From NCBI GenBank assembly GCA_011109175.1, contig RDEW01000025.1, forward strand, positions 279,990-343,989: a stretch of 64,000 nucleotides of DNA, given 5' to 3'. A program made the position numbers and the translations under genes. The first letter of the stretch is position 1; each line of letters starts with the position of its first letter. Shown piece after piece: positions 3,111-53,050 of the stretch. The notes beneath the pieces are model-generated. The model saw only the letters and a list, made by a program, of their open reading frames with translations. It was not told where the DNA came from and did not search any database. This stretch comes from Dicyema japonicum (taxonomy: Eukaryota > Animalia > Dicyemida).

Positions 3111-4789
3111 CTTCTTTACAAAATCTTTGAAACTTGTTTTTTAACACGTATGAACGACTCTCTTTTCGAAACAATCTCTCTTAACCATGTGAGACAAGTA
3201 CTCCTAATATTAAATTTAAAATTTGTTATCTTTTTGTTTTTGTTCAAATTCTTAATTCCTTTTTCCAATTTATTAAAAATTTAAACAAGAGAATCTCCTA
3301 ATTATCAGGATACGGTCAGTTGCGATTCTTCGTTCAGGCGAATCAATATTCATTAGTCCATCAGTCTGTAATACAATCTCAACCGTTTCCTTATCAGCTT
3401 TTGCGACGTGAGGGTGGTTCATAGCTGTGAGCGGTACTTATTTTGTAAAAATTCTTGAAATTCTGCTTTTAAGACAATTTTTCCATAAGTGTTTTGATTT
3501 TTTTCAATAATTAGAGTCAGTTGAGAATACAAAGGTCAACACGAGAATAAGGATACTTCATGGTTGTCAGTATTTCTTTTAATAAGTGTACGCTCGTACC
3601 AGAGTATCGTCCCGGAGTATCGGTTCCGTCAAATAAGATAAGGATATTAGCTTTAGACTTGCAAAAACTCAGGACTAACTGAGAGTTACCCCCATGTTTC
3701 TAAAAGAATATCGAGTGACTAGTCAGTCTCCAAAGGAAATCGGCCATCAACATAATTTTACTTTCGACTGCATTCCGCGGTCCCTTATAACAAAAGATCT
3801 TTACGGCAGATTTTCATACGGTAAACATTAAACAAAGTCATAATCGAAGTACCCCAAATGAACGATAAATTTTCTCAACCTTCAAAGATCAAACCTGGAC
3901 CTCAGAAAAAATGTCAACTTGTCAAATGATCAATCCGGGTCAGGAAGTGGCCAAGGACAATATAATTTGCTGTCAACTACTCCATTGAGTTATTTCTGAA
4001 AGAGTTCCTATAACTGTTATTCTGGATAGACTTGAAAGTCAAAACCATCCTATAAAGTTAAAATATGGTGGAGACAATACAAATATACTTCTCCCAAATG
4101 TTTACATATCACATGATCCGCATTTTTTTGACAGCCTAGTCACCTCATGTAGGGTGATTCGAATTGAGATCATTCGCATTCGACAGAGGAAAATGGAAAA
4201 GACTAACTATAAATATTGTTTCTTTGAGTGTTGCACATGCAGGGCTATAATAATTATGGCTTTCGTGAAAGTGCCATAATAATAACGTGGAAAAAGTTTT
4301 TCGTTGGTAATGCGTGTGCTCATTGATAATCCGAATATCTATTTGTGAGCGAAAGAACTTTGTTCTTATTTTAAAAAAAAAAAACTTGATCAATCAATTT
4401 GGTATTCGAAAAAAGATGCCATAAGAAATTATTTTCTAAAAAGTGAAGTTAACTAGTGGTTCTCAACATCGCCCAAATTAGCGTTGGAATTTTCACTTTT
4501 TGGAGGTGGAATTCTAAATTTTGGCGTTGGATTTTAATTATTGATTTTTTTTTTTTATAGAAAGAACGAAAGTATTATTGGAAAGTAAAAATAGAATAAA
4601 TTGTTATTTAATGAAATAAAATTAAACAACTAATATTTTTAGAGAGCTACCATAGATTATTAAGAAGCGTAAACTTAATTTCTTAATTCGTAATTACCAA
4701 AGTAGATTCTTATCGTTTGGGTTTATTCTTGAATTATCAAATTAATTTAATATTTATTTATTTTTAAAAATTATTTTATAAGTGTGATT

Positions 4790-41259: not shown

Positions 41260-42175
41260 TCATGGGCAAGAATAAAGAGAAGTCACGTTGGATATAAGTC
41301 GTGAAGTCCAAAAATACCACATTGAAATACACTTAGTTTTACGTCGTTTTTCATTATTTTAAGTCCTTCACTGGTGTACATGGAATAGATTACTTGCTCA
41401 TCGGTTGCAGTCAGATTCATTGCGATCATCTTGTCGAAGAATTTTTCATAGGCATCACAAAATGCTGAAACTGGTTCAATATGACCTGCCAAAGTACCCC
41501 CAGCTACCCAGACTTTTGTTTCTTTGACTATTCTTTCAATCGGATAATCATAGAACTTATAAGCTTGAGTCATTAACACACGTGTCTTTTCCATATATTT
41601 TGAGGCTCTCAGCGAGAACTTGGTTTTACTATAAGAGTATCGAAATAGACCAACATCAACCCAGGCGATGTATGAAAATTTACCATGGAAGAGTTTGATA
41701 GTCCGTCTGATCATGTCGTGTTTGGAATGCATTACAGCACAATAATCAGAATTGACGGCCTCTGGTGATTTTTTACCAAATCCGGGAAGAGTAAATATAT
41801 GCTTTATTTCATTTATTCTGCGGAAGCCAAAGAGTTCTGATCTATTGACGTACAATAATGTAGTGGGAAGATTTCTTCTGATACTTTCCATATGTTTCAG
41901 GATTTTCTTACTGTCCGAGAAGAAGACGAGATGGTTATCAACATGTCTGAATATACGCATCCATTTAATATATTGAAAGGAATTACGGAGTTCAGTTGGT
42001 TTTTGAAATTTTCCAATGTTGTAGTAGCCGCTTACTATTATGAATTTTTCACCTCTTATTTCCCTTCTGCAAATGGCCTAAAATATTCTGATTGGCTTAC
42101 CAATAATGATACAATCTGATAAATTGTTGCCATAAACAATAATAGAATCAGAGTGACTCTGTACCTCATTATCAT
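41260..42175 (-). CDS. HtrL/YibB-family putative glycosyltransferase, paralog 1 (N-terminal signal anchor)
   Basis: Exon 1 42101-42175 (MIMRYRVTLILLLFMATIYQIVSLL); intron 42078-42100 (23 nt); then IVSGYYNIG..Y.KWM..DNHLVFFSD..YCAVMHSK..YIAWVDVG..VAGG..TDEQ. As assembled it stops at 41283; a 1-nt deletion versus paralog 3 hides the homologous stop at 41260. Confidence 0.7.
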
Positions 42176-42519
42176 TACTCAGAGATTTATTTTTTATGTT
42201 GAATATTATTTTATTAATTTTTAATTTATTTAAAAATATTTATTTATTTTTAAATTAATATAAATTGATTTTGGTGCTTTTTGTAGTTAACTTTATTGCC
42301 AAGTATTTATTTGCCAAGTATTGTCTCAAAAAATATATTTATTTACTAAATTCAAATTTAATGAACCCCAACGTTCGAGATTTTCCTTATCGAATTTTTC
42401 TACGCTGCTTTAGTCAAATAAAATTGATATAATAATAAGATTACGGGATTAGTATTAATTTTTAATTTCAAGGTTAAATCGAAGAAATTTCGATTATTCA
42501 TTTGATCACTATTTATACA

Positions 42520-42770
42520 TCATTTTGTAACTAAAGAATACTTTCGGCTTACCTTCCAGTCGATCTCCGTTGGGATATCTGGTGAGCCTGGCCCTAGCAC
42601 AGCAAAGTTTATCAGGGTGATCGATCGGTTTGCAGGACTACGGAAGCGAGAGACTGTAATGACTCGATGGCTCTTCCAGAACATTGGGCTTGCGATCATG
42701 AGTGGCACTCCCATTGCTTTCTCAATGCTTGCTACCCAAAATGGATCACCCGTCTCGAAAATTTGAATTA
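42520..42770 (-). other. Possible orphan exon
   Basis: Open frame FETGDPFWVASIEKAMG..PTEIDWK followed by a 22-nt GTAAGCCGAAAGTATTCTTTAG intron-like segment. Confidence 0.25.
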
Positions 42771-43486
42771 ATTAATTATTGAGTAATTGAATATAAAAAA
42801 AATATAATTAAAAAAAGAGAATTATCGACCTTTTTAGTCACGAAAATACAAAATCCAAATTTAACCGCCATAATATAATTTATATTTTTTGTGAAAGTGA
42901 ATTTTTACCCTCTACTAAGTCGGGATCTACGGGTCCCCAAGTTACACAAGATCATACAAAAGGTTACTAAATCTTTATTAAAATGGTATATAAAATTTAA
43001 AAAAATTTAAAAAAACAAAATTTAAAAGACTTTAATTAACTACTTTTTTAGACTGAAACCCAGCACTCTTACTAGTACCTTAAGAGTCGTAGGTTCCTCA
43101 GGATTTCCCCACTTGCCCAACATCTCTGGTGATACTCATTTGCTATATGATAGTCTTTTGTTACTGGCATAATACTCTTGGCCATAGATACCCAGAGACG
43201 AGATAGTGAGACATGGAGTTCTGGACATTTTTACTATTTTGATGTGGTGACGTGACTTTCAATGTTAATTTCAAATCCAACTTTTATCTTCTCTAAGCTA
43301 TTATTCACGTCACTACAAGAGTGGTAAAAGGCAGAGGCCCACGTGGGTTAGAATCAAACTTATAAAGGCATTTCATGCACATTTTTCTAGATCGGAAGGA
43401 CTGTGACCAATTAACACTCCCCTTCCATCTTCAAAATTCCAAAATACTTTGCTTGATCTTCCAAACGCTTCTGAGGTGTCTTCAGC

Positions 43487-44830
43487 GTGTCCATTCAAAA
43501 TGGCCTCCATCAAAACATCCTCAATTCAAAATGGCCTACAATTAATTTTTTCAGGTTTTGGATAAGTTCATCAATAAACATCACGAGATTTTAGCGAAAC
43601 GACATATTAGGTAAAAAATCATCTTTTTTAAATCTTATAAAAATTGATTTTACCAAGGTCCTCGACATCTTTAGGTAAAAATCATTTTTTAAATCTTATA
43701 AAAATTGATTTTACCAAGGTCCTCGACATCTTTAGGTAAAAAATCATCTTTTTTAAATCTTATAAAAATTGATTTTACCAAGGTCCTCGACATCTTTAGG
43801 TAAAAAATCATCTTTTTTAAATCTTATAAAAATTGATTTTACCAAGGTCCTCGACATCTTTAGGTAAAAAATCATCTTTTTAAATCTTATAAAAATTGAT
43901 TTTACCAAGGTCCTCGACATCTTTAGGTAAAAAATCATCTTTTTTAAATCTTATAAAAATTGATTTTAACGGGTCCTATGGGTAAGTGGAACATTTTACC
44001 AAGGTCCATATCTCAATTGGAGGCTGGCACAACGTTTTTAGAAGTACATTTGACACTAAACAAGACGCCAAGAAATTTTGTTGAGAAATTGATAAAAGAA
44101 GAAAGCATAATGATAAAATTCTTAAGATTACGAAATGGAGAAAAATTAAAGAAAAACTAAATATATCGCTTTATTTGAGAATACATTGAGATTTGTTTAA
44201 GAACAAATGTTACTTAACTTGGATCCGATAGAATATATATTCAATTTAGTTATATATTCATTTTCTATTTTTCCTTTTGAAAATAAATCTTTCATTTTAA
44301 ATTTAAATAAAAATATTTAATAAAATAAATGTTTACCTAAAGATGTCGAGGACATTGGTAAATTGTTCCACTTACCCATAGGACCTGTTAAAATCAATTT
44401 TTATAAGATTTCAAAAAGATGACTTTTTCACCTAAAGATGTCGAGGACCTTGCAAAATGTTCCACTTACCCATAGGACCCGTTAAAATCAATTTTTATAA
44501 GATTTCAAAAAGATGACTTTTTCACCTAAAGATGTCGAGGACCTTGGTAAATTGTTCCAGTTACCCATAGAACCTGTTAAAATCAATTTTTATAAGATTT
44601 CAAAAAGATGACTTTTTTTCCTAAAGATGTCGAGGACCTTGGAAAAATCAATTTTTATAAGATATAAAAAGATGACTCTTTTACCTAAAGATGTCGAGGA
44701 CCTTGGTAAAATATCTCGTGATGTCTATTGATGAACGTATCAAAACCTGAGAAATTTTATTGGAGGCCATTTTGAATGGAGGCCGTTTTGAATGGAGGCA
44801 TTTTGAAAGAGGCCATTTTGAATGGGAACC
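43487..44830. mobile_element. Foldback/MULE-like non-autonomous element with long modular inverted arms
   Basis: Direct repeat GTCTTCAGC at 43478-43486 and 44831-44839. Inverted termini CCATTCAAAATGGCC / GGCCATTTTGAATGG. The left arm has six starts of a 61-64-nt unit (43608-43960); the right arm has inverted units spaced 95, 94, 95 and 64 nt (44336-44710). AT-rich spacer between the arms. Confidence 0.85.
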
Positions 44831-45639
44831 GTCTTCAGCGAACATTGATGAAAGCGAAACTTCCCTGTCACAAAAACTTTATGCCCCCTGTTGTGTCTCC
44901 GTTACAGTCACAATACGCTTTTACGGAGAAACAAATTTATAAATTAGTTTTGTCTTTAAATTTTTCACGGTCAACTCATATCACCATTGTGGGACGTCCT
45001 CCAGGGAAAAGAGATCCTCTATGTATGCAGCCTTTGCCACTGAAGTCTCCTTGGACGGATATATAACTGACGTCTTTAGAAATTGAAGAAGACGAAGAGG
45101 AATTGTGGAAGATCTTAGACTAGGTAGGTAGACTTTTGGAATAGAATGAACGAGCAATCACGGCACGAGCAACAGCAGTAACCAACGTACTTTCTGTTCT
45201 CACATTATCCAGACAAGCTCAAGGAAACAACTCAGAAATGTACGAATATTATTATTTCTAGATTAGTTTTCAATATATTTTGATTCTATTGGATTATGTT
45301 TGCTTATTTTTGTATTTAAAATCATTCACTTTACACCCCGACGAGGAAAACACTGAATTTGATTAAAAGACAAGAATTCAGACTAAAATTATTTTTTAGA
45401 AAATTATAACCAAAATTAATTTAAAAAATATACAGTTCTGATTAATCCATAAAATAATAAATTTACAAAAAAATTATGCTCACAATTACATCATTTTAAG
45501 GACATGAATAATAAGTAGTCACTGGATAAAAAAACGTGAAGTCCAAAAAACCACAATGCTGTTTATTATTTACGAAAATGGGAACGTTGATCTGGCAAAA
45601 TCTTAGGATTGGTTAACCAGTGGAAATAATAGCCCGAGA

Positions 45640-46090
45640 TCGGAGACATGTATTCTTTGCTTCATGACATGATTTTTTGACACCAATGATTCTCTGTAAT
45701 CATTGCAAGAAGGCTAAGATATCAGTGGATCATTTGGCTACATGTTGTACCAGAATGCTTAATAGTGATTATGTGAGGTGGTATCACAATAAACCAGACA
45801 TTTTCGTGTATGACAAAATGAAGAATGAGATTGTGGTTATTCAAGTCGGAACCACCTCACAAGAAGCACTCAAGACTACAGAGATAGAAAAGCTACACTA
45901 GTATGACTTGTTCGCTTGAGAATTGAGCACAGTATATGATGCTTCGATGCGAATCATCGACAGGATTATCTCCACGTGCTATAGTAATCATTCGAAATCT
46001 TTGTCGATTGATGTGCCAATAAGAGCTTTATTCAATCGGTGATGTTAAACAAATCATTAGAAAGTATGATTGTCGAGAACTAACATGGCC
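45640..46090 (+). mobile_element. R4/NeSL-like CCHC + REL fragment
   Basis: CNHCKKAKISVDHLATCC..YVR..NKPDIFVYDK..EIEKLH*YDL. Confidence 0.75.
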
Positions 46091-46214
46091 ACTCAATTAC
46101 ATTACTAATTTAAATAAAAACTGAAATTAATTATGAAAAAATAAATTATTTTTATTTATTAACATGGCAACAATCTTTGGTAAGCCGAGCACAAACAATC
46201 ACAACTAAATCAGT

Positions 46215-47133
46215 TTATGGGCACGAATAATTAGAAGTTACGTTGGATAAAAGTAGATGAAGTCCAAAAATACCACATTTAAAGACACTTAGTTTTATTT
46301 GTTTTTCATTATTTTAAGTCCTTCACTGGTGTACATTGCGTAGAGAAATTGTTCATCAGTTGCCATCAGATTCATTAAGACCATCTTGTTAAAGAATTTT
46401 TCATATGCATCACAAAATACTGAAACTAGGTCAATATGACCTACCAAGGTACCTCCACCTATCCAGACTTTAGATTCTTTGATAATTTTTTCAACCGGCA
46501 AGTCATAGAACTTGTAAGCTTGAGTCATTAACAAACGTGTCTTATCCATGTATTCCGAGGCCCTCAAAGAGAACTTGGTTTTACTATAAGAGTATCGAAA
46601 TAGACCAACATCAACCCAGGTGATGTATGAAAAATTACCATGGAAGAGTTTGATAGTCCGTCTGATCATGTCGTGTTTGGAATGCATAATAGCACAATAA
46701 TCAGGATTGATGGCCTCTGGTGAATTCATAGCAAATCCAGGAAAAGTAAATATATGTTTTATTTCATTTATTCTGCGGAAGCCAAACAATTCTGATCTAT
46801 TGACGTGCATTAATGTAGTGGGAAGATTTCTTCTGATACTTTCCATGTGTTTCAGGATTTTCTTACTGTCCGAGAAAAAAACAAGATGGTTATCAACATG
46901 TCTGAATATGCGCATCCATTTAATATATTGAGAAGGTTTACGGACAAAATTATCTGGTTTTTTGAATGTTCCAATATCGTAATAGCCGCTTACTAGAATG
47001 AATTTTTCACCCTTTACTTCTCTTCTGCTAACAGCCTAAAATATTTTGATTGCGTTACCGCTAATGATAAAATCTGATAAATTGTTGCTGGAAATAGTAA
47101 TAGAATGAGAGTCACTCTGTATCTTATTATCAT
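46215..47133 (-). CDS. HtrL/YibB-family putative glycosyltransferase, paralog 2
   Basis: Exon 1 47059-47133; 23-nt intron 47036-47058 at the same position; same motifs. A 1-nt deletion in an A-run gives a stop at 46295; shifting frame restores ..KLSVFKCGIFGLH..YSCP* ending at 46215. Confidence 0.7.
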
Positions 47134-47599
47134 TAACGAGAAAATGAATTTTATTGGGTTTGAATAAATATTAATTTAAAAAATATTTATTTATTCTAAT
47201 TTAAAATAAATTACTTTTTGTAGTTCAAGAGATTAACTAATATTTATTAAACGACAACAGATGATGGTGAGGGCAGTCAGTCTGCCTAACAGTCCTTCTA
47301 GCCATGACCAGTTACTTTAAAAACTGTTGGTTTCCTACGTTTCTGCAATGATTTAGGAAACCCATTGAGAGAAAAGGGTGTCCCAATAAGAGATATTCTG
47401 ATCTTCTCTAGAAGGGCTCCCCGATATAATTCCTCTGCAGACACAAAAGAACGGACTTCAGAGGGCGGCTGGCTCGCTGACGGAAAAAATAAGTGTTCGG
47501 GTGCTATTAAAGGCTGAAATCGCCTGATTATTCAATAAGGTCCGCCACGTAATTTTGAAATGATAAATAAATTCACTAAATTCAAATTAACCCACGTTA

Positions 47600-47990
47600 G
47601 GATTTACCTGCTTGAATTTGTAAAAAATCGAACTTTGGTCATAAAAATTTTTAAAAGACACGAATTGAATAAAGTCACTAGTCCGTTAATTAAGAGGCCA
47701 GGATTGCGTGTGAACGACCCTCTGTCTAATCCAAAGTCCTTCCTCAGGGTTCGTTTCTGTTAGAAGCGAAAGGTGTCCGTCATTTTTCAATGACCCCGAA
47801 ATTCTCCGTAGCAATAGGCAAGAAATGGTAGTTTTCTTTGAGTGACTTGTATTTCCTTGACTCTTCGTTGTCTGCCGAGTCTCCAGGTGAGTGTGTGGCC
47901 TTCAGTTATTTCAGAAAAGGTTTCAACGCATTCCACCTGTCCTCTTCCCACCGCCTCTGTCAAGCCTAGGGGTTCTAGATTAATAGAATT
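47600..47990 (-). mobile_element. CRE-like 3' remnant
   Basis: ADNEESRKYKSLKENYHFLPIATENFG matches the CRE C-terminal K..KY..L...Y.F.PIA.E motif. Confidence 0.55.
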
Positions 47991-47999
47991 GTTATAAAA

Positions 48000-50600
48000 A
48001 ATTAAATCACCTATTTTTTTATTTGGCTGAATAATAGTTCATGGATTTGAACCAACTCCCCCATTTTCCAATGTAATATCAGACACTAGACCCAATAAGG
48101 ATGCCTCATCCCTCGACGTTCAAGATTGAACTCTTTAAAGTGGGGGAAGAAGCTGAACTGCTTGAAATTCCCGCTGCACTTATAAAGTAAAATGACTTGG
48201 TTCAGGGGTCCCACAATTACGTTACCCTTCCCAGTCAAGGCTGCCAAGTTAGTGAATTCTGTCGACGAAAAACATAAATCGAGCAAATCAAGTGCCCCCT
48301 CTACCAAAAGGTACTACTAGGGCTTGTGGCAATAAGAAGATCGAAAAGCAATGTCCTTGTTTCTGACAGAATACCTTTATCTAGAAGGTGCATTAAAGTC
48401 CAGTGAACCTCAAAGTAAAGTAATATAACGACACCCTCACGTTGGGTTATGTTCTCAGGCTCTGGAATGAGGTGAAACTGGTTTTTGTAAAAAAACAACG
48501 AGTTCCCCAGGGTCTGTTCAAAATTTTCTTGTCATTTCCTGGCCCGGCCAAAATGAAGACTAAATTAGCTGTGTATCCTGATATCGTATTCTATGCTCAT
48601 TCACGGAGTCCAAGAAGCATCCTTCGATAGATATTCAAGAAGAATCCTATCACAATACGTTCCGGAAATTTTCACCTCTGTGGCAAATTAGAGTTTTGGC
48701 TCTCCCGTCTGCAGCTCGGGCATTATCTCCGGATTAGGACCACCAATGGCACTAAAAAACTTAGGGTATTATTCGACTCTATCAGCTGGACACCTGAAGG
48801 CAGCCGGCCTCCTATGCGTTACTGAGGTTGGGGGTTACTAACTAAGACACAAACTTAATATTTTTTGTATAGATATGTCATCCAAAATATAATTTTTTTT
48901 AATATTTAAAAAATTAACTATTTCAAACACTTCGTTATTTCCAGTCACTTTCAAGTGATCACTAACTTTTGTTAGATACAAAAAAATTTTATTTTTAAAC
49001 ACTTTAAGAAAAATTTCTCAACTTCAAGATCCGAGCTGTCCAAGTACGGGCAACAAAGGGAATGATGAAGAGTGTCTTTAGCATTGCTGAGGATATTTCT
49101 GGAGAAAAGCAGATTTCGTTGATAGCGCTTGAGAAAAGTCGTCCTTCAAAAATTCAATGTTAATGTTCTTGCATTTAAAAAACAATATGATATGTCAACG
49201 ATGTTTGGGGACAAATGTGAAGTGTCTTTCAAGTTTTGTTGCCTGAAGATCACTGGTCACTGCTTTAGGGTGATTTGTTCTAGGACATCTGAGGTGGATA
49301 GAAGCACTTTGTCGTAACAAGAGGACCTTAGCGAACTACTAATTCCCGAACATAATTTTCCTGTTTACTTCTGAAGCAAAAAAGGCAGATCCAGACACTT
49401 TGAGTGGCATCCCAATTCGCCTTGGAGATTTGACCTCGAAAGACAAAAAGTGGTGGACAGTCGCTTTGATCTTGGAAGCCAAAGTCGGATAATTTTATAA
49501 GGCACTCGTCAATATTAGATAGGTCAGGCATTCGTAAAAAATAGAGCTTGTTCATTGGGGAAGGTTTCCGTAGGATGACCAACTACAGAGTGATTCGAAT
49601 CCTTTCGAGTCAACTTGTCCTCAGTCAATGGGGTAATTTTGTAGACTTTTCTCAAGGCTAAACTGATGGCCCACACCTACAATATTGAACATTACAGACC
49701 AATGAGGTAATTTATCTACCCCCAGTCGCTTCAGAAAGGCAACTACATAAAGCAGACGCTCCCATAGATCAATCAGGTATATTTGGTGGGTCGTATAAAA
49801 TTGAAAACGGGCCAACGGGAAAGAAGAGGTCCTTAGGTCGTCCATAAAGTAAAAGTGCACATCGACAAAGCCGAGTGTGTGATTCTGTTTAAATAGTCCT
49901 GTAAATCTGCATGACGACCGTAGATTTTATGGGACTCCACTGGAGAAAACCTATGGCAGTTGAATTATCGAAACACTTGTTTGAAGAAGGTGTCTCTCGT
50001 GAATCCCAGAAGAGTGGAACCCTCAACCGGAGTGGACAGCAGCGAGATTCGAACCCGGAACCATCTGGATCACTGAGATGCTTAGGATTGTATGTAGAGT
50101 CTGTTACTGGAAATTGGTCTTTGACAGCATCACATATTTGATCCCAAAGTGAGATGTTCCACAGTAATCAAGGAACTCATCCCCATTACGTGTATACCAT
50201 CATTATATACACTTGAGGAACACTGGAATTGGTCTTCTCCCTAAGATTCAGACTGGAACAGACATAGGTCGATAAATTTCAGAGGATTATGCAAGGAGGT
50301 AGTCTTGTAGTCTCAATTTGAACATTGTCCGTAATTGGCAGAGTTTATTCACGAAACTTCAAAATCACCAAGAAGGTGTCCAAGCCAACGAATTAAGTGA
50401 TCCTTATAGTAATTCACAGTCTTCTAGAATTTCTGCAAAAAAACTCAATCGTAGTGTCCTTCTTTAGTCCTGCAAATGGGCTTTCTGGTTCTTTACAGAA
50501 AAGACGGGTATACTGGTACCTCTGTAACAAATTCAAAATCCAGAGATGTTTGCTCCACATGCTTAGTCTATCAGATCGGTTTAGTGCTTCGAGATGAAGG
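48000..50600. mobile_element. Cluster of highly decayed retroelement remnants
   Basis: Scattered motifs (VPQG-like, TAAC-like tail at about 48836, B-box repeat at about 50050); no intact ORF; boundaries unclear. Confidence 0.3.
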
Positions 50601-50757
50601 AAAGTTTGCGAACACGTGTGCTAGAGTAATCGTAGAAAAGCGAGAAAGTCCCAACGAAGAGTCTGAATTTTTCAAATATAAAAAATATTTAATAATAATA
50701 AAATAATCTAATTTACGTAAAAAACGAAAAGTTTATTATGTTCATAATTAAATCATT

Positions 50758-51674
50758 TTATGGACACGAATCATAAGTAGTCACGTCGGATAAAAGTACG
50801 TGAAGTCCAAAAATACCACATTGAAATACACTCAGTTTTACGTCGTTTTTCATTATTCTGAGTCCTTCACTGGTGTACATTGCGTAGAGTACTTGCTCAT
50901 CAGTGGCCATCAGGTTCATTGAGATCATCTTGTTAAAGAATTTTTCATAGGCATCGCAAAACGCTAAAATTGGATCAATATGACCCGCTAAAGTACCGCC
51001 AGCTACCCAGACTTTTGTTTTTTTGACTATTCTTTCAATCGGATAATCATAGAACTTATAAGCTTGAGTCAGTAACACACGTGTCTTGTCCATATACTCT
51101 GAGGTTCTCAGCGAGAACTTGGTTATACTATAAGAGTATCGAAATAGACCAACATCAACCCAGGCGATGTATGAAAATTTATCATGGAAGAGTTTGATAG
51201 CCCGTCTGATCATGTCGTGTTTGGAATTCACGACAGCACAATAATCAGAATTGGCGGCCTCTGGTGATTTTTTACCAAATCCGGGAAGAGAAAATATCTG
51301 CTTTATTTCATTTATTCTGCGGAAGCCAACCAGTTCTGATCTATTGACGTGCAATAATGTAGTGGGAAGATTTTTTCTGATACTTTCCATATGTTTCAGG
51401 ATTTTCTCATCGTCAGAGAAAAAAACGAGGTGGTTATCAATCTTTCGAAAATGACACATCCAGGCAAAATAGCTAGAAGGTTTTCGAAGACCAGTTGGTT
51501 TAGTGAATTCCCCGATATTATAGTAGCCGCTCACTAATATGAATTTCTCTCCCTTTATTTCCCTTCTGTTTACAGCCTAGAATGTTATTATTGGCTCACC
51601 GAGAATGATATAATCTGATAAATTATTATAAGAAAGAGTAACAAAATCAGAATGACTCTGTACTTCATTATCAT
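50758..51674 (-). CDS. HtrL/YibB-family putative glycosyltransferase, paralog 3 (intact, 297 aa)
   Basis: Exon 1 51600-51674 (MIMKYRVILILLLFLIIIYQIISFS); intron 51577-51599 (23 nt); exon 2 50758-51576 is open to TAA. Confidence 0.78.
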
Positions 51675-51779
51675 TACAAAAAATTGTATTTATTATTTAT
51701 TTATTTATTATTTTTTTTAAATATTTATTTATTTAATAAATTAAGTTTTCCGGTTTGTTTAATAGCTTTGTCAAAATGT

Positions 51780-53050
51780 TTTCCCATTAACTTTATCTCA
51801 CATTCAGATGTCAGTGAGGGTTTGAAGAGGATGAATTCTTCCCTCTCATGTGGACCTGATTCTATCCCTGGTATCTTACTAAAACACCTGGATCTATAGC
51901 AATTAATGCAATCACAGTGATTTTCAACTATTCAATAAACATGAATACAATTTCAACTATCTGGAAACTGTCCTATATATTCCCAATCCTTAAGCCTGGG
52001 AAGCCTAAGGACAATCCTGTATCATTTCGACCAATTTCTTTACTATGCACTCAAAATTATTGGAAAAACTGATTCTTAATCTTACCACCTCACTGCCCTC
52101 AATCAATTTATCCCTGAAGGCTTTAACACAAATCCTTGCCACCTCAAACAGTCGTTTGCTCGATCGATTTACAAAAGGCCTTCGACTCTGTCTCCAGGAA
52201 AATCCTAACCCGGAAATTGTTTGGCCTCTTCGTCTCCCCCAATATAAAACTCTGGCTTGCTAACTTCATCAATGTAAGAAGGGCCCGGGTATACATGGAT
52301 GTGACAAGATTACTACCCGATGATGTTCTACAAGGTTCCCCTTTATCACCCACCTTATTTAACTTACACATGTCCGATCTACCAAAACCCGATGATAAAG
52401 ACGATTTCCTCCTTTCATATGCTGATGACCTACTAATCGGATCCCGCGATCAAGATCTCCTAATGGCTTCAGAAAGACTACGAGAATTCCTTCACGAGAT
52501 TCAAATTTAGCTAAATACCTTTCACAAGAGACTGAAAATCTTGGGGATCACCTTCGACACACATGTGTTTTCATCTCATGTCGACTGCATCTCTGGAAGC
52601 TGCTCAAGAAAGCTAGGGATAATCAAATCTATTTTCGGTGGCATTAAAACCCCTTTCCCAGCTTTAAAATGATTATTCAAACAATTCATTAGGGTCAGCT
52701 ATACCTGGCCTATGGGGAATCAATCTGTCCTGGACGAACAAGCAAAAAATCCACGACATTCACTCCTCAACAGCCACAACTATTAGTAATCTTGGAAAAC
52801 TAGAAAAACTGATCCCTTCATCACTAGAGGACCTTATCCGACAAAATGGAAAGGGACTTGCTACCCTGTGCAGACATAACTCTCTTATGAGAAGAGTGTA
52901 CATCACCCCTCTCCAATTCCTATTCCCCAAACAACCCTCCCACAGAGAAGTTGCGTTGGATCCCAGAAGGTGCACGAGGAGAAGATGAGAAATCTGATTG
53001 AAGCCTTCGAGATCACCATGTCTCTTCCATGTAGCAAGTTGAATTTTTTG
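51780..53050 (+). mobile_element. Jockey/CR1-type LINE RT, frameshifted
   Basis: SCGPDSIP, IFPILKPGKP..SFRPISLL, CSIDLQKAFDSVSR, VLQGSPLSPTLFNLHMSDLP, SYADDLLI, ILGITFD. Confidence 0.82.

Follow-up and report, generated by a model that had tools for sequence, protein, structure and literature searches.

What do three closely similar genes of the HtrL/YibB type, standing near each other in the genome of a dicyemid, encode, and where did they come from? The question is raised by a 64,000-nucleotide (nt) stretch of Dicyema japonicum contig RDEW01000025.1 (here called the window; coordinates are positions in the window unless stated otherwise). D. japonicum, which parasitizes octopus kidneys, was isolated for genome sequencing from its host, Octopus sinensis, and its gene set of ~5,000 is among the smallest in animals (PMC6736024). 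A preliminary description of the window had rightly supposed a reduced eukaryote, here a dicyemid with micro-introns, and had proposed an intron-containing triplet of membrane-anchored putative glycosyltransferases that were either ancestral or horizontally acquired and then given an intron. The observation and the family assignment are right, the intron is normal for dicyemids, and horizontal transfer is without support. Taken as a whole, the data are probably best explained by a dispersed-tandem array of three paralogs that belong to the animal branch of the HtrL/YibB family, encode putative glycosyltransferases, and descended vertically.

The three HtrL-type paralogs are all encoded on the minus strand at spacings of 4955 and 4544 bp and are 78 to 91% identical (repeat finder), in agreement with the same-strand copies ~5 kb apart described earlier. 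Mutually similar open frames are located on this strand at 41283 to 41960, 46295 to 46915, and 50758 to 51534 (open reading frame [ORF] list and direct reading). Each of them runs in frame upstream to a TAG, and an ATG-started 75-nt stretch lies directly beyond. A fourth copy was not found within the window by tblastn. The motifs SGYYxIG, DNHLVFFSD, WVDVG, AGG/GGG, and TDEQ and the variable blocks named in the preliminary description were all found in the sequence. Its left end of the array, position 41260, includes the ancestral stop of copy 1, but the real in-frame stop is at 41283 to 41285 due to a 1-nt deletion. The genes are composed as follows.

51675 to 51800, minus strand: copy 3, conserved upstream stretch (~125 nt) with the AATAAATAAATAT block, a putative core promoter and 5' untranslated region (alignment; identity falls to background beyond it).
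51600 to 51674, minus strand: copy 3, exon 1 of 25 codons, MIMKYR followed by a hydrophobic stretch, a putative signal anchor or signal peptide (Kyte-Doolittle 17-residue mean, 3.05).
51577 to 51599, minus strand: copy 3, putative 23-nt GT..AG micro-intron, phase 0 (sequence; reading through it gives a stop).
50758 to 51576, minus strand: copy 3, exon 2 of 272 codons plus stop, full HtrL_YibB domain with a predicted glycosyltransferase A (GT-A) fold and the ancestral C terminus (Pfam, AlphaFold2, colinearity with LOC115232272).
47134 to 47260, minus strand: copy 2, conserved upstream stretch (upstream alignment, sliding identity).
47059 to 47133, minus strand: copy 2, exon 1 of 25 codons (translation, hydropathy).
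47036 to 47058, minus strand: copy 2, putative 23-nt GT..AG micro-intron (sequence).
46295 to 47035, minus strand: copy 2, exon 2 of 246 codons plus a premature stop at 46295 to 46297 (Pfam E value, 5.8e-8; alignment).
46215 to 46294, minus strand: copy 2, out-of-frame relic of the ancestral C-terminal tail (tblastn, 71% identity over 28 residues in another frame).
42176 to 42300, minus strand: copy 1, conserved upstream stretch (upstream alignment, sliding identity).
42101 to 42175, minus strand: copy 1, exon 1 of 25 codons (translation, hydropathy).
42078 to 42100, minus strand: copy 1, putative 23-nt GT..AG micro-intron (sequence).
41283 to 42077, minus strand: copy 1, exon 2 of 264 codons plus stop, with a 1-nt deletion near 41300 (Pfam E value, 6.8e-9; alignment).
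41260 to 41282, minus strand: copy 1, rest of the ancestral tail to the ancestral stop (41260 to 41262), now out of frame (alignment).

The AATAAATAAATAT block upstream of the ATG is common to all three copies in the alignment of the upstream regions.

The gaps between the two exons (GTAAGCCAATCAGAATATTTTAG, GTAACGCAATCAAAATATTTTAG, and GTGAGCCAATAATAACATTCTAG) are each 23 nt long with GT..AG borders, differ from each other at 3 to 7 positions, and are located after codon 25, in phase 0, in all three copies. The 75-nt first exon and the phase-0 intron at one position described earlier thereby have a matching sequence in every copy. A stop is hit when the gap, the length of which is not divisible by 3, is read through. 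In each copy, the terminal TAG of the gap closes the exon 2 frame upstream, and the conserved SGYY strand (FILVSGYYNIG, in the Pfam match) is therefore left without an ATG of its own. The gap length and the GT/AG borders have been kept across copies that differ at synonymous divergences (dS) of 0.29 to 0.44. In the spliced reading, the span from KY to SGYY is 37 residues, compared to 35 in the intronless relative LOC115232272 (P0001, read from position 9965 of L001, which is region 63425 to 84297 of contig VCDQ01003981.1), and the spliced reading is colinear with this relative. From these sequence features, we infer that the gap is a spliceosomal micro-intron. Dicyemid introns have a median length of 27 bp, with two thirds being <30 bp (PMC6543705), and a mean length of 38 bp (PMC6736024); the only other animals with introns this short are myxozoans (PMC13644364). 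Because dicyemid introns are typically 22 to 30 nt long, a 23-nt intron is ordinary for this genome, and the idea that it is a special feature is not supported.

The first exons translate to MIMRYRVTLILLLFMATIYQIVSLL, MIIRYRVTLILLLFPATIYQILSLA, and MIMKYRVILILLLFLIIIYQIISFS, i.e., a basic head (MIMKYR, MIMRYR, or MIIRYR) and a hydrophobic stretch with Kyte-Doolittle 17-residue means of 2.05 to 3.05. Both the translation and the hydropathy are consistent with the N-terminal anchor or signal segment proposed previously, and the order of basic tail, one hydrophobic segment, and catalytic-type domain is that of type II enzymes. The 25-codon exon would thus supply a few basic residues and a hydrophobic segment for entry of the protein into the secretory pathway, and, after the 23-nt spliceosomal micro-intron, the next exon would add a linker of ~10 residues and one domain with the GT-A fold.

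Exon 2 alone was the input of all protein searches, family scans, alignments, trees, and fold predictions described below, and colinearity was judged from the separate exon translations. The exon 2 products matched the Pfam family PF09612 with scores of 49.5 (copy 3; E value, 5.7e-13), 36.1, and 33.1 bits, compared to the gathering cut-off of 24.1 bits, and the match spans profile positions 4 to 242 of 267. A profile of 104 family sequences aligned with Escherichia coli HtrL (b3618) at full length (hhalign; 245 columns; probability, 99.1%; E value, 4.6e-19), whereas by BLASTP the E. coli protein was matched at an E value of 5e-10 over residues 14 to 143, with 24% identity over the first half of the length. 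The three dicyemid proteins are distant members of the HtrL/YibB family, as had been suggested from the motifs, and not equivalogs of bacterial YibB. They share with the bacterial proteins homology over the whole domain, a size of ~270 to 285 residues, the xxTAYFDIG first strand, W-x-D-x-G, the GG strand, and the D-Q-x motif. However, the E. coli protein has no membrane segment and its gene is located beside rfaD(hldD)-waaF-waaC, whereas in the dicyemid genes an intron and an exon for targeting are present and the surrounding DNA is rich in transposons. Bacterial family members are located in lipopolysaccharide (LPS) and lipooligosaccharide (LOS) sugar gene clusters (PMC4172580). Of the animals, Caenorhabditis elegans has HTRL-1 (PMC8989417) and corals carry the HtrL domain (PMC6214176). 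According to the paper that named HTRL-1, the domain is only bacterial outside nematodes (PMC8989417); contrary to this, we identified hundreds of HtrL members in molluscs, cnidarians, dicyemids, and giant-virus and phage clusters.

The AlphaFold2 model of copy 3 has a predicted local distance difference test score (pLDDT) of 90.7 and a predicted template modeling (TM) score of 0.89, and only residues 1 to 3 and 260 to 272 are below a pLDDT of 50. Solved structures searched with the family profile gave chance-level matches alone (E value of 0.8 or worse). With Foldseek, the best 50 matches were all members of glycosyltransferase family 6 (GT6), i.e., ABO GTA/GTB and alpha-1,3-galactosyltransferase (E value, ~1e-7; probability, 1.0; TM score, 0.40 to 0.44). 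VIA-align, which is independent of Foldseek, gave Z scores of 11.6 for BoGT6a, 11.0 for LARGE1, 11.0 for PBCV-1 A64R, 10.8 for GTB, 10.6 for UGGT, 10.2 for XXT1, 9.4 for GnT-I, and 9.4 for LgtC. Nine of its ten best matches are glycosyltransferases, and 183 to 199 residues were aligned for the compared glycosyltransferase chains. On the basis of the model, the dicyemid domain is predicted to have the GT-A fold in a single Rossmann-like alpha/beta/alpha domain, the nearest neighbours of which belong mostly to retaining families (GT6, GT8, GT24, and GT34), and the glycosyltransferase-like fold that had been anticipated is thereby recovered. Aspartate D141 of the W-V-D-V-G motif is the only invariant column in the 104-sequence alignment and directly follows strand 136 to 140; W139, G143, R146, G193, and D226 are nearly invariant in the family alignment. 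In the model, D141 appears to sit where GT-A enzymes carry DxD, as placed by the model strand and not by residue-level superposition. With enzymes of GT6, GT8, GT24, and GT34, the dicyemid domain is predicted to share the fold (Z scores, 9.4 to 11.6), and its central strand appears to end in an Asp at the place of their DxD or NxN, but the identity is only 7 to 13%, the TM scores are 0.40 to 0.44, and the dicyemid motif is D-x-G. Viral Atlas clusters contain fusions of the HtrL domain with further glycosyltransferase domains (GT2 and Gly_transf_sug). Based on the fold, the bacterial LPS/LOS context, and these fusions, the dicyemid HtrL proteins are putative glycosyltransferases. The domain would act as a nucleotide-sugar-dependent glycosyltransferase in the lumen of the endoplasmic reticulum or Golgi apparatus, in which case it would build glycans carried by secreted or surface molecules.

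An exhaustive representative search returned 348 proteins at an E value of ≤1e-3 and 203 at ≤1e-10. Exact look-ups of the window's ORF and of the octopus protein P0004 in the contig collection gave no entry. Every named near match is an animal protein with 27 to 35% identity over the full domain: from the molluscs Lottia gigantea, Octopus sinensis and O. bimaculoides (chromosome-scale records), Aplysia, Nucella, Babylonia, Littorina, Lymnaea, Argopecten, and Solemya, and from the nematode Soboliphyme and the anemone Exaiptasia. Invertebrate relatives had been mentioned in the preliminary description, and molluscs, a nematode, and a cnidarian are indeed among the named near matches. The best match of the model to an Atlas cluster (TM score, 0.89) was to an HtrL cluster of 994 members, 100% of them eukaryotic and mostly mollusc. 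When compared with Lottia XP_009063932, Octopus bimaculoides XP_014782549, Aplysia XP_005112889, Exaiptasia XP_020913395, and Soboliphyme VDP22445, the dicyemid proteins share full-domain similarity, the N-terminal hydrophobic segment, and the close structural match to the mollusc cluster, whereas the stem is ~10 residues in the dicyemid and 60 to 120 residues in the others. The O. bimaculoides gene (within CM046604.1, region 39220649 to 39244852) also has a whole first exon (28 codons plus 1 nt) for the membrane segment. However, it extends over 18.2 kb, with 360 codons, a long stem, and introns of ~12 kb and ~5 kb, the first of which (12 kb) is in phase 1, whereas the dicyemid genes are 0.9 kb long with a 23-nt intron in phase 0. 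A shared intron position with Octopus was considered as a proof of common descent and was ruled out, since the phases differ (1 versus 0) and the stems are not alignable.

Maximum likelihood (ML) trees, both free and constrained, were obtained by full LG+G4 searches with 49 rows, E. coli HtrL included. The three copies and LOC115232272 form a long-branched clade with a support of 100, which adjoins unnamed sequences and Soboliphyme and falls outside the mollusc group with Octopus in both the FastTree (149 rows) and ML (49 rows) trees. E. coli HtrL is on a very long branch in the trees. It is very likely that the genes were inherited vertically within animals and then expanded in dicyemids, and the nearest named relatives, which are animal proteins, favour vertical descent; the ancestral gene would have been an animal one, widespread in molluscs and present in cnidarians and nematodes.

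The top match of the search was LOC115232272 (43% identity over 97% of the length; E value, 2e-75), which is filed as an Octopus sinensis protein. Its gene is located on the 373-kb contig VCDQ01003981.1 (GCA_006345805.1). In the L001 region of this contig, on the strand opposite to LOC115232272, there is a threonyl-tRNA synthetase gene with GT..AG gaps of 22 nt (6126 to 6105), 29 nt (5959 to 5931), 22 nt (5786 to 5765), and 25 nt (5617 to 5593) and two more ~25-nt gaps further downstream; its pieces match the TGS, tRNA_SAD, and class II core domains, in that order. The hexamer CACGTG was observed 16 times in L001 versus 2.9 times expected, and 36 times in the window versus 7.4 times expected from base composition, i.e., in fivefold excess. 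Two further "Octopus sinensis" proteins, which are 82 to 85% identical to LOC115232272, are encoded on the same contig (within region 332570 to 353403) and on the 483-kb contig VCDQ01001777.1 (within region 365683 to 386561), the latter of which shares with window positions 4160 to 4285 a 126-nt repeat that is 90% identical. Judged from these sequence features, the best reading of VCDQ01003981.1 and VCDQ01001777.1 is that the octopus assembly contains DNA of a dicyemid, either D. japonicum or another species. The three HtrL paralogs annotated as octopus (LOC115232272, LOC115232297, and LOC115232105) are intronless, and a profile search seeded with the nearest clade matched only these "octopus"-labelled dicyemid paralogs. 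The LOC115232272 group comprises the closest relatives of the window copies, with the same C-terminal tail, the same N-terminal anchor, and a multicopy state, but it lacks the intron between anchor and domain and is separated by a deep split (protein distance, ~1.5 substitutions per site). It thus appears that at least two large contigs in the public assembly of Octopus sinensis, together with three RefSeq proteins encoded on them, are dicyemid, and a host-labelled match taken at face value would lead to a false story of gene transfer between host and parasite.

Copy 3 is the only fully intact one and the only one that keeps the ancestral C terminus, being colinear with LOC115232272 to the end. 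In copy 1, the final ~12 ancestral codons are put out of frame by the 1-nt deletion near 41300; they correspond to residues that are disordered in the model (pLDDT of <50 at residues 260 to 272). Copy 2 has a GTA-to-TAA change and a 1-nt deletion and ends 27 codons early, without strand 247 to 251 and the tail. The pairwise ratios of nonsynonymous to synonymous substitutions (dN/dS) are 0.30 to 0.34, with dS values of 0.29 to 0.44, and a three-point split of the distances gives a dN/dS of ~0.30 for the copy 2 branch. As the ratio is ~0.3 on that branch also, the lesions are recent or tolerated; copy 1 would have lost only a disordered tail, and copy 2 may be heading to decay. The similarity between the copies extends from ~125 nt upstream of the ATG to ~40 nt past the ancestral stop. 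The unit of duplication would accordingly have been ~1.05 kb long, with a promoter stub, the gene, and the intron, and would have been duplicated within dicyemids at the level of DNA and not by retroposition, because the intron is kept in the copies. The copy that differs from the other two is not the same throughout the gene but switches from block to block, with agreement between copies 1 and 2 at ~42010 to 41940 and between copies 1 and 3 at ~41800 to 41500. A runs test shows that such site patterns are clustered (p = 0.0005). The block pattern fits gene conversion or recombination between the copies, which would explain the clustering of differences in short segments noted earlier.

Several observations weigh against parts of this reading. 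The four runs that contain the stretch, all from one 2019 study, cover genes and spacers alike from 46200 to 51750 without joints and are therefore DNA contigs, not RNA. The scores for the NCBIfam YibB equivalogs (TIGR02192/NF008462) are far from the cut-offs (54.8 versus 264.9 bits and 29 versus 342 bits). The hydrophobic segment could also be a cleaved signal peptide, judging from S-x-S/A before the exon junction in copies 2 and 3, and not a type II anchor. That the products are soluble, either secreted or luminal, after such cleavage and are not type II Golgi enzymes is possible, if doubtful: the n-region is short and basic, the hydrophobic core is ~13 to 18 residues long, small residues occupy positions -3 and -1 at the exon junction of copies 2 and 3 (SLA followed by A and SFS followed by A), and the stem is only ~10 residues. 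However, position -1 is Leu in copy 1, the hydrophobic segment of the true octopus homolog is 20 residues long and comes with a long stem, as is typical of type II enzymes, and type II topology prevails among the GT-A enzymes of the secretory pathway, which counts against a soluble product. C. elegans HTRL-1, for its part, has been described as secreted (PMC8989417), and a peptide from snail mucus has a weak match to an HtrL protein (PMC11206429). As to the activity, our literature search found no PF09612 member of any organism with a demonstrated activity and no biochemical data on any HtrL member; the motif is D-V-G (family consensus, D-I-G), that is, D-x-G in place of the canonical DxD; and nucleotidyltransferases of the same superfold, including cytidylyl- and guanylyltransferases, score only slightly lower than the best glycosyltransferase (Z scores of 8 to 9.7 versus 11.6). 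It is nevertheless unlikely that the domain is another nucleotide-dependent transferase or a noncatalytic binding protein, considering the nine glycosyltransferases among the ten best structural matches, the best 50 Foldseek matches all being GT6, the viral fusions with GT2 and Gly_transf_sug, and the bacterial members in LPS/LOS sugar clusters (PMC4172580). Finally, two of the three copies have C-terminal lesions. The stop and frameshift of copy 2 with the loss of strand 247 to 251, the tail frameshift of copy 1, and the transposon-rich surroundings would suit an array in decay, with gene conversion maintaining the similarity between copies of which two (1 and 2) or all three are pseudogenes. 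This is quite unlikely, since the dN/dS values are ~0.3 in all pairs and on the copy 2 branch, the rest of the frames is open over 246 to 272 codons, the intron length and GT/AG borders are kept, and the lesion of copy 1 touches only residues that are disordered in the model.

The origin of the genes has been weighed in the same way. Most of the near matches are unnamed metagenome or Logan sequences, and the backbone of the tree is weak; a constraint grouping the dicyemid genes with octopus is 12.6 log-likelihood units worse and is not rejected (approximately unbiased [AU] test, p = 0.21). A transfer from host to parasite, in which a gene was taken from the cephalopod and then expanded, e.g., to copy host glycans, could draw on that result, on the true octopus homologs among the best scores (P0004, with 35% identity and an E value of 6.5e-34, and P0010), and on the first exons, which hold the membrane segment only in both octopus and dicyemid. 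It is very unlikely, however. The 43% "Octopus sinensis" match is not an octopus gene but a dicyemid paralog and therefore says nothing for such a transfer, both the ML and FastTree trees place the dicyemid clade outside the mollusc clade with Octopus, Lottia scores equal to Octopus, and the intron phase is 0 in the dicyemid and 1 in the octopus. An elaborated form, in which captured cephalopod genes were multiplied, streamlined by removal of the stem and by shrinkage or loss of introns, and kept diverse by gene conversion, is highly improbable; if it were true, the parasite in the octopus kidney could coat itself with glycans that are variable or resemble those of the host. A direct acquisition by the dicyemid lineage from a bacterium, a giant virus, or a phage, with a later gain of the intron, would be in line with the first description of the family in bacteria, beside LPS core genes, with the many Atlas clusters carrying PF09612 that are viral, and with the existence of intronless dicyemid-type paralogs such as LOC115232272. 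Such an acquisition, which the preliminary description had allowed for, is extremely improbable, because E. coli HtrL is very long-branched and has no more than 24% identity, over half of the length, the named matches at 27 to 35% identity are all animal proteins with N-terminal membrane segments, and the best structural cluster is entirely eukaryotic and mostly mollusc.

Although the gene set of D. japonicum is among the smallest in animals (PMC6736024), a probable glycosyltransferase family has been retained in it and has increased in copy number. The three genes are reasonable candidates for a putative role in parasite surface or secreted glycans at the host interface, and their compact putative enzyme of 270 residues is a convenient entry to HtrL function in bacteria, giant viruses, and animals.

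The window has a GC content of 36.9% and is rich in repeats; the published values for the genome are 36.7% GC and 49% repeats, with many long interspersed nuclear elements (LINEs) (PMC6736024). The 4-kb spacers between the copies are mutually unrelated and contain transposons, and among the other long ORFs of the window no Pfam match was obtained except to LINE reverse transcriptase. The neighbours of the array are a foldback element and LINE fragments, not genes for LPS/LOS core biosynthesis. One LINE fragment (51800 to 52510, plus strand; RVT_1 at 52136 to 52510, E value of 5.6e-16) is oriented head to head with copy 3 and starts just past the conserved upstream stretch. A LINE-like ORF is also located directly upstream of LOC115232272 (8900 to 9877 of L001).

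The depth of DNA contigs over the most conserved HtrL segments (46572 to 46757 and 51036 to 51407) is ~5 to 14 times that of the neighbouring spacers. In run X2, the summed word depth, which does not equal copy number, is 6626 in the gene segments versus ~450 to 490 in the spacers. The excess hints at more near-identical HtrL paralog segments elsewhere in the genome. In the spacer between copies 1 and 2, direct-repeat arrays with units of ~64 nt and ~94 nt are located at 43478 to 44839.

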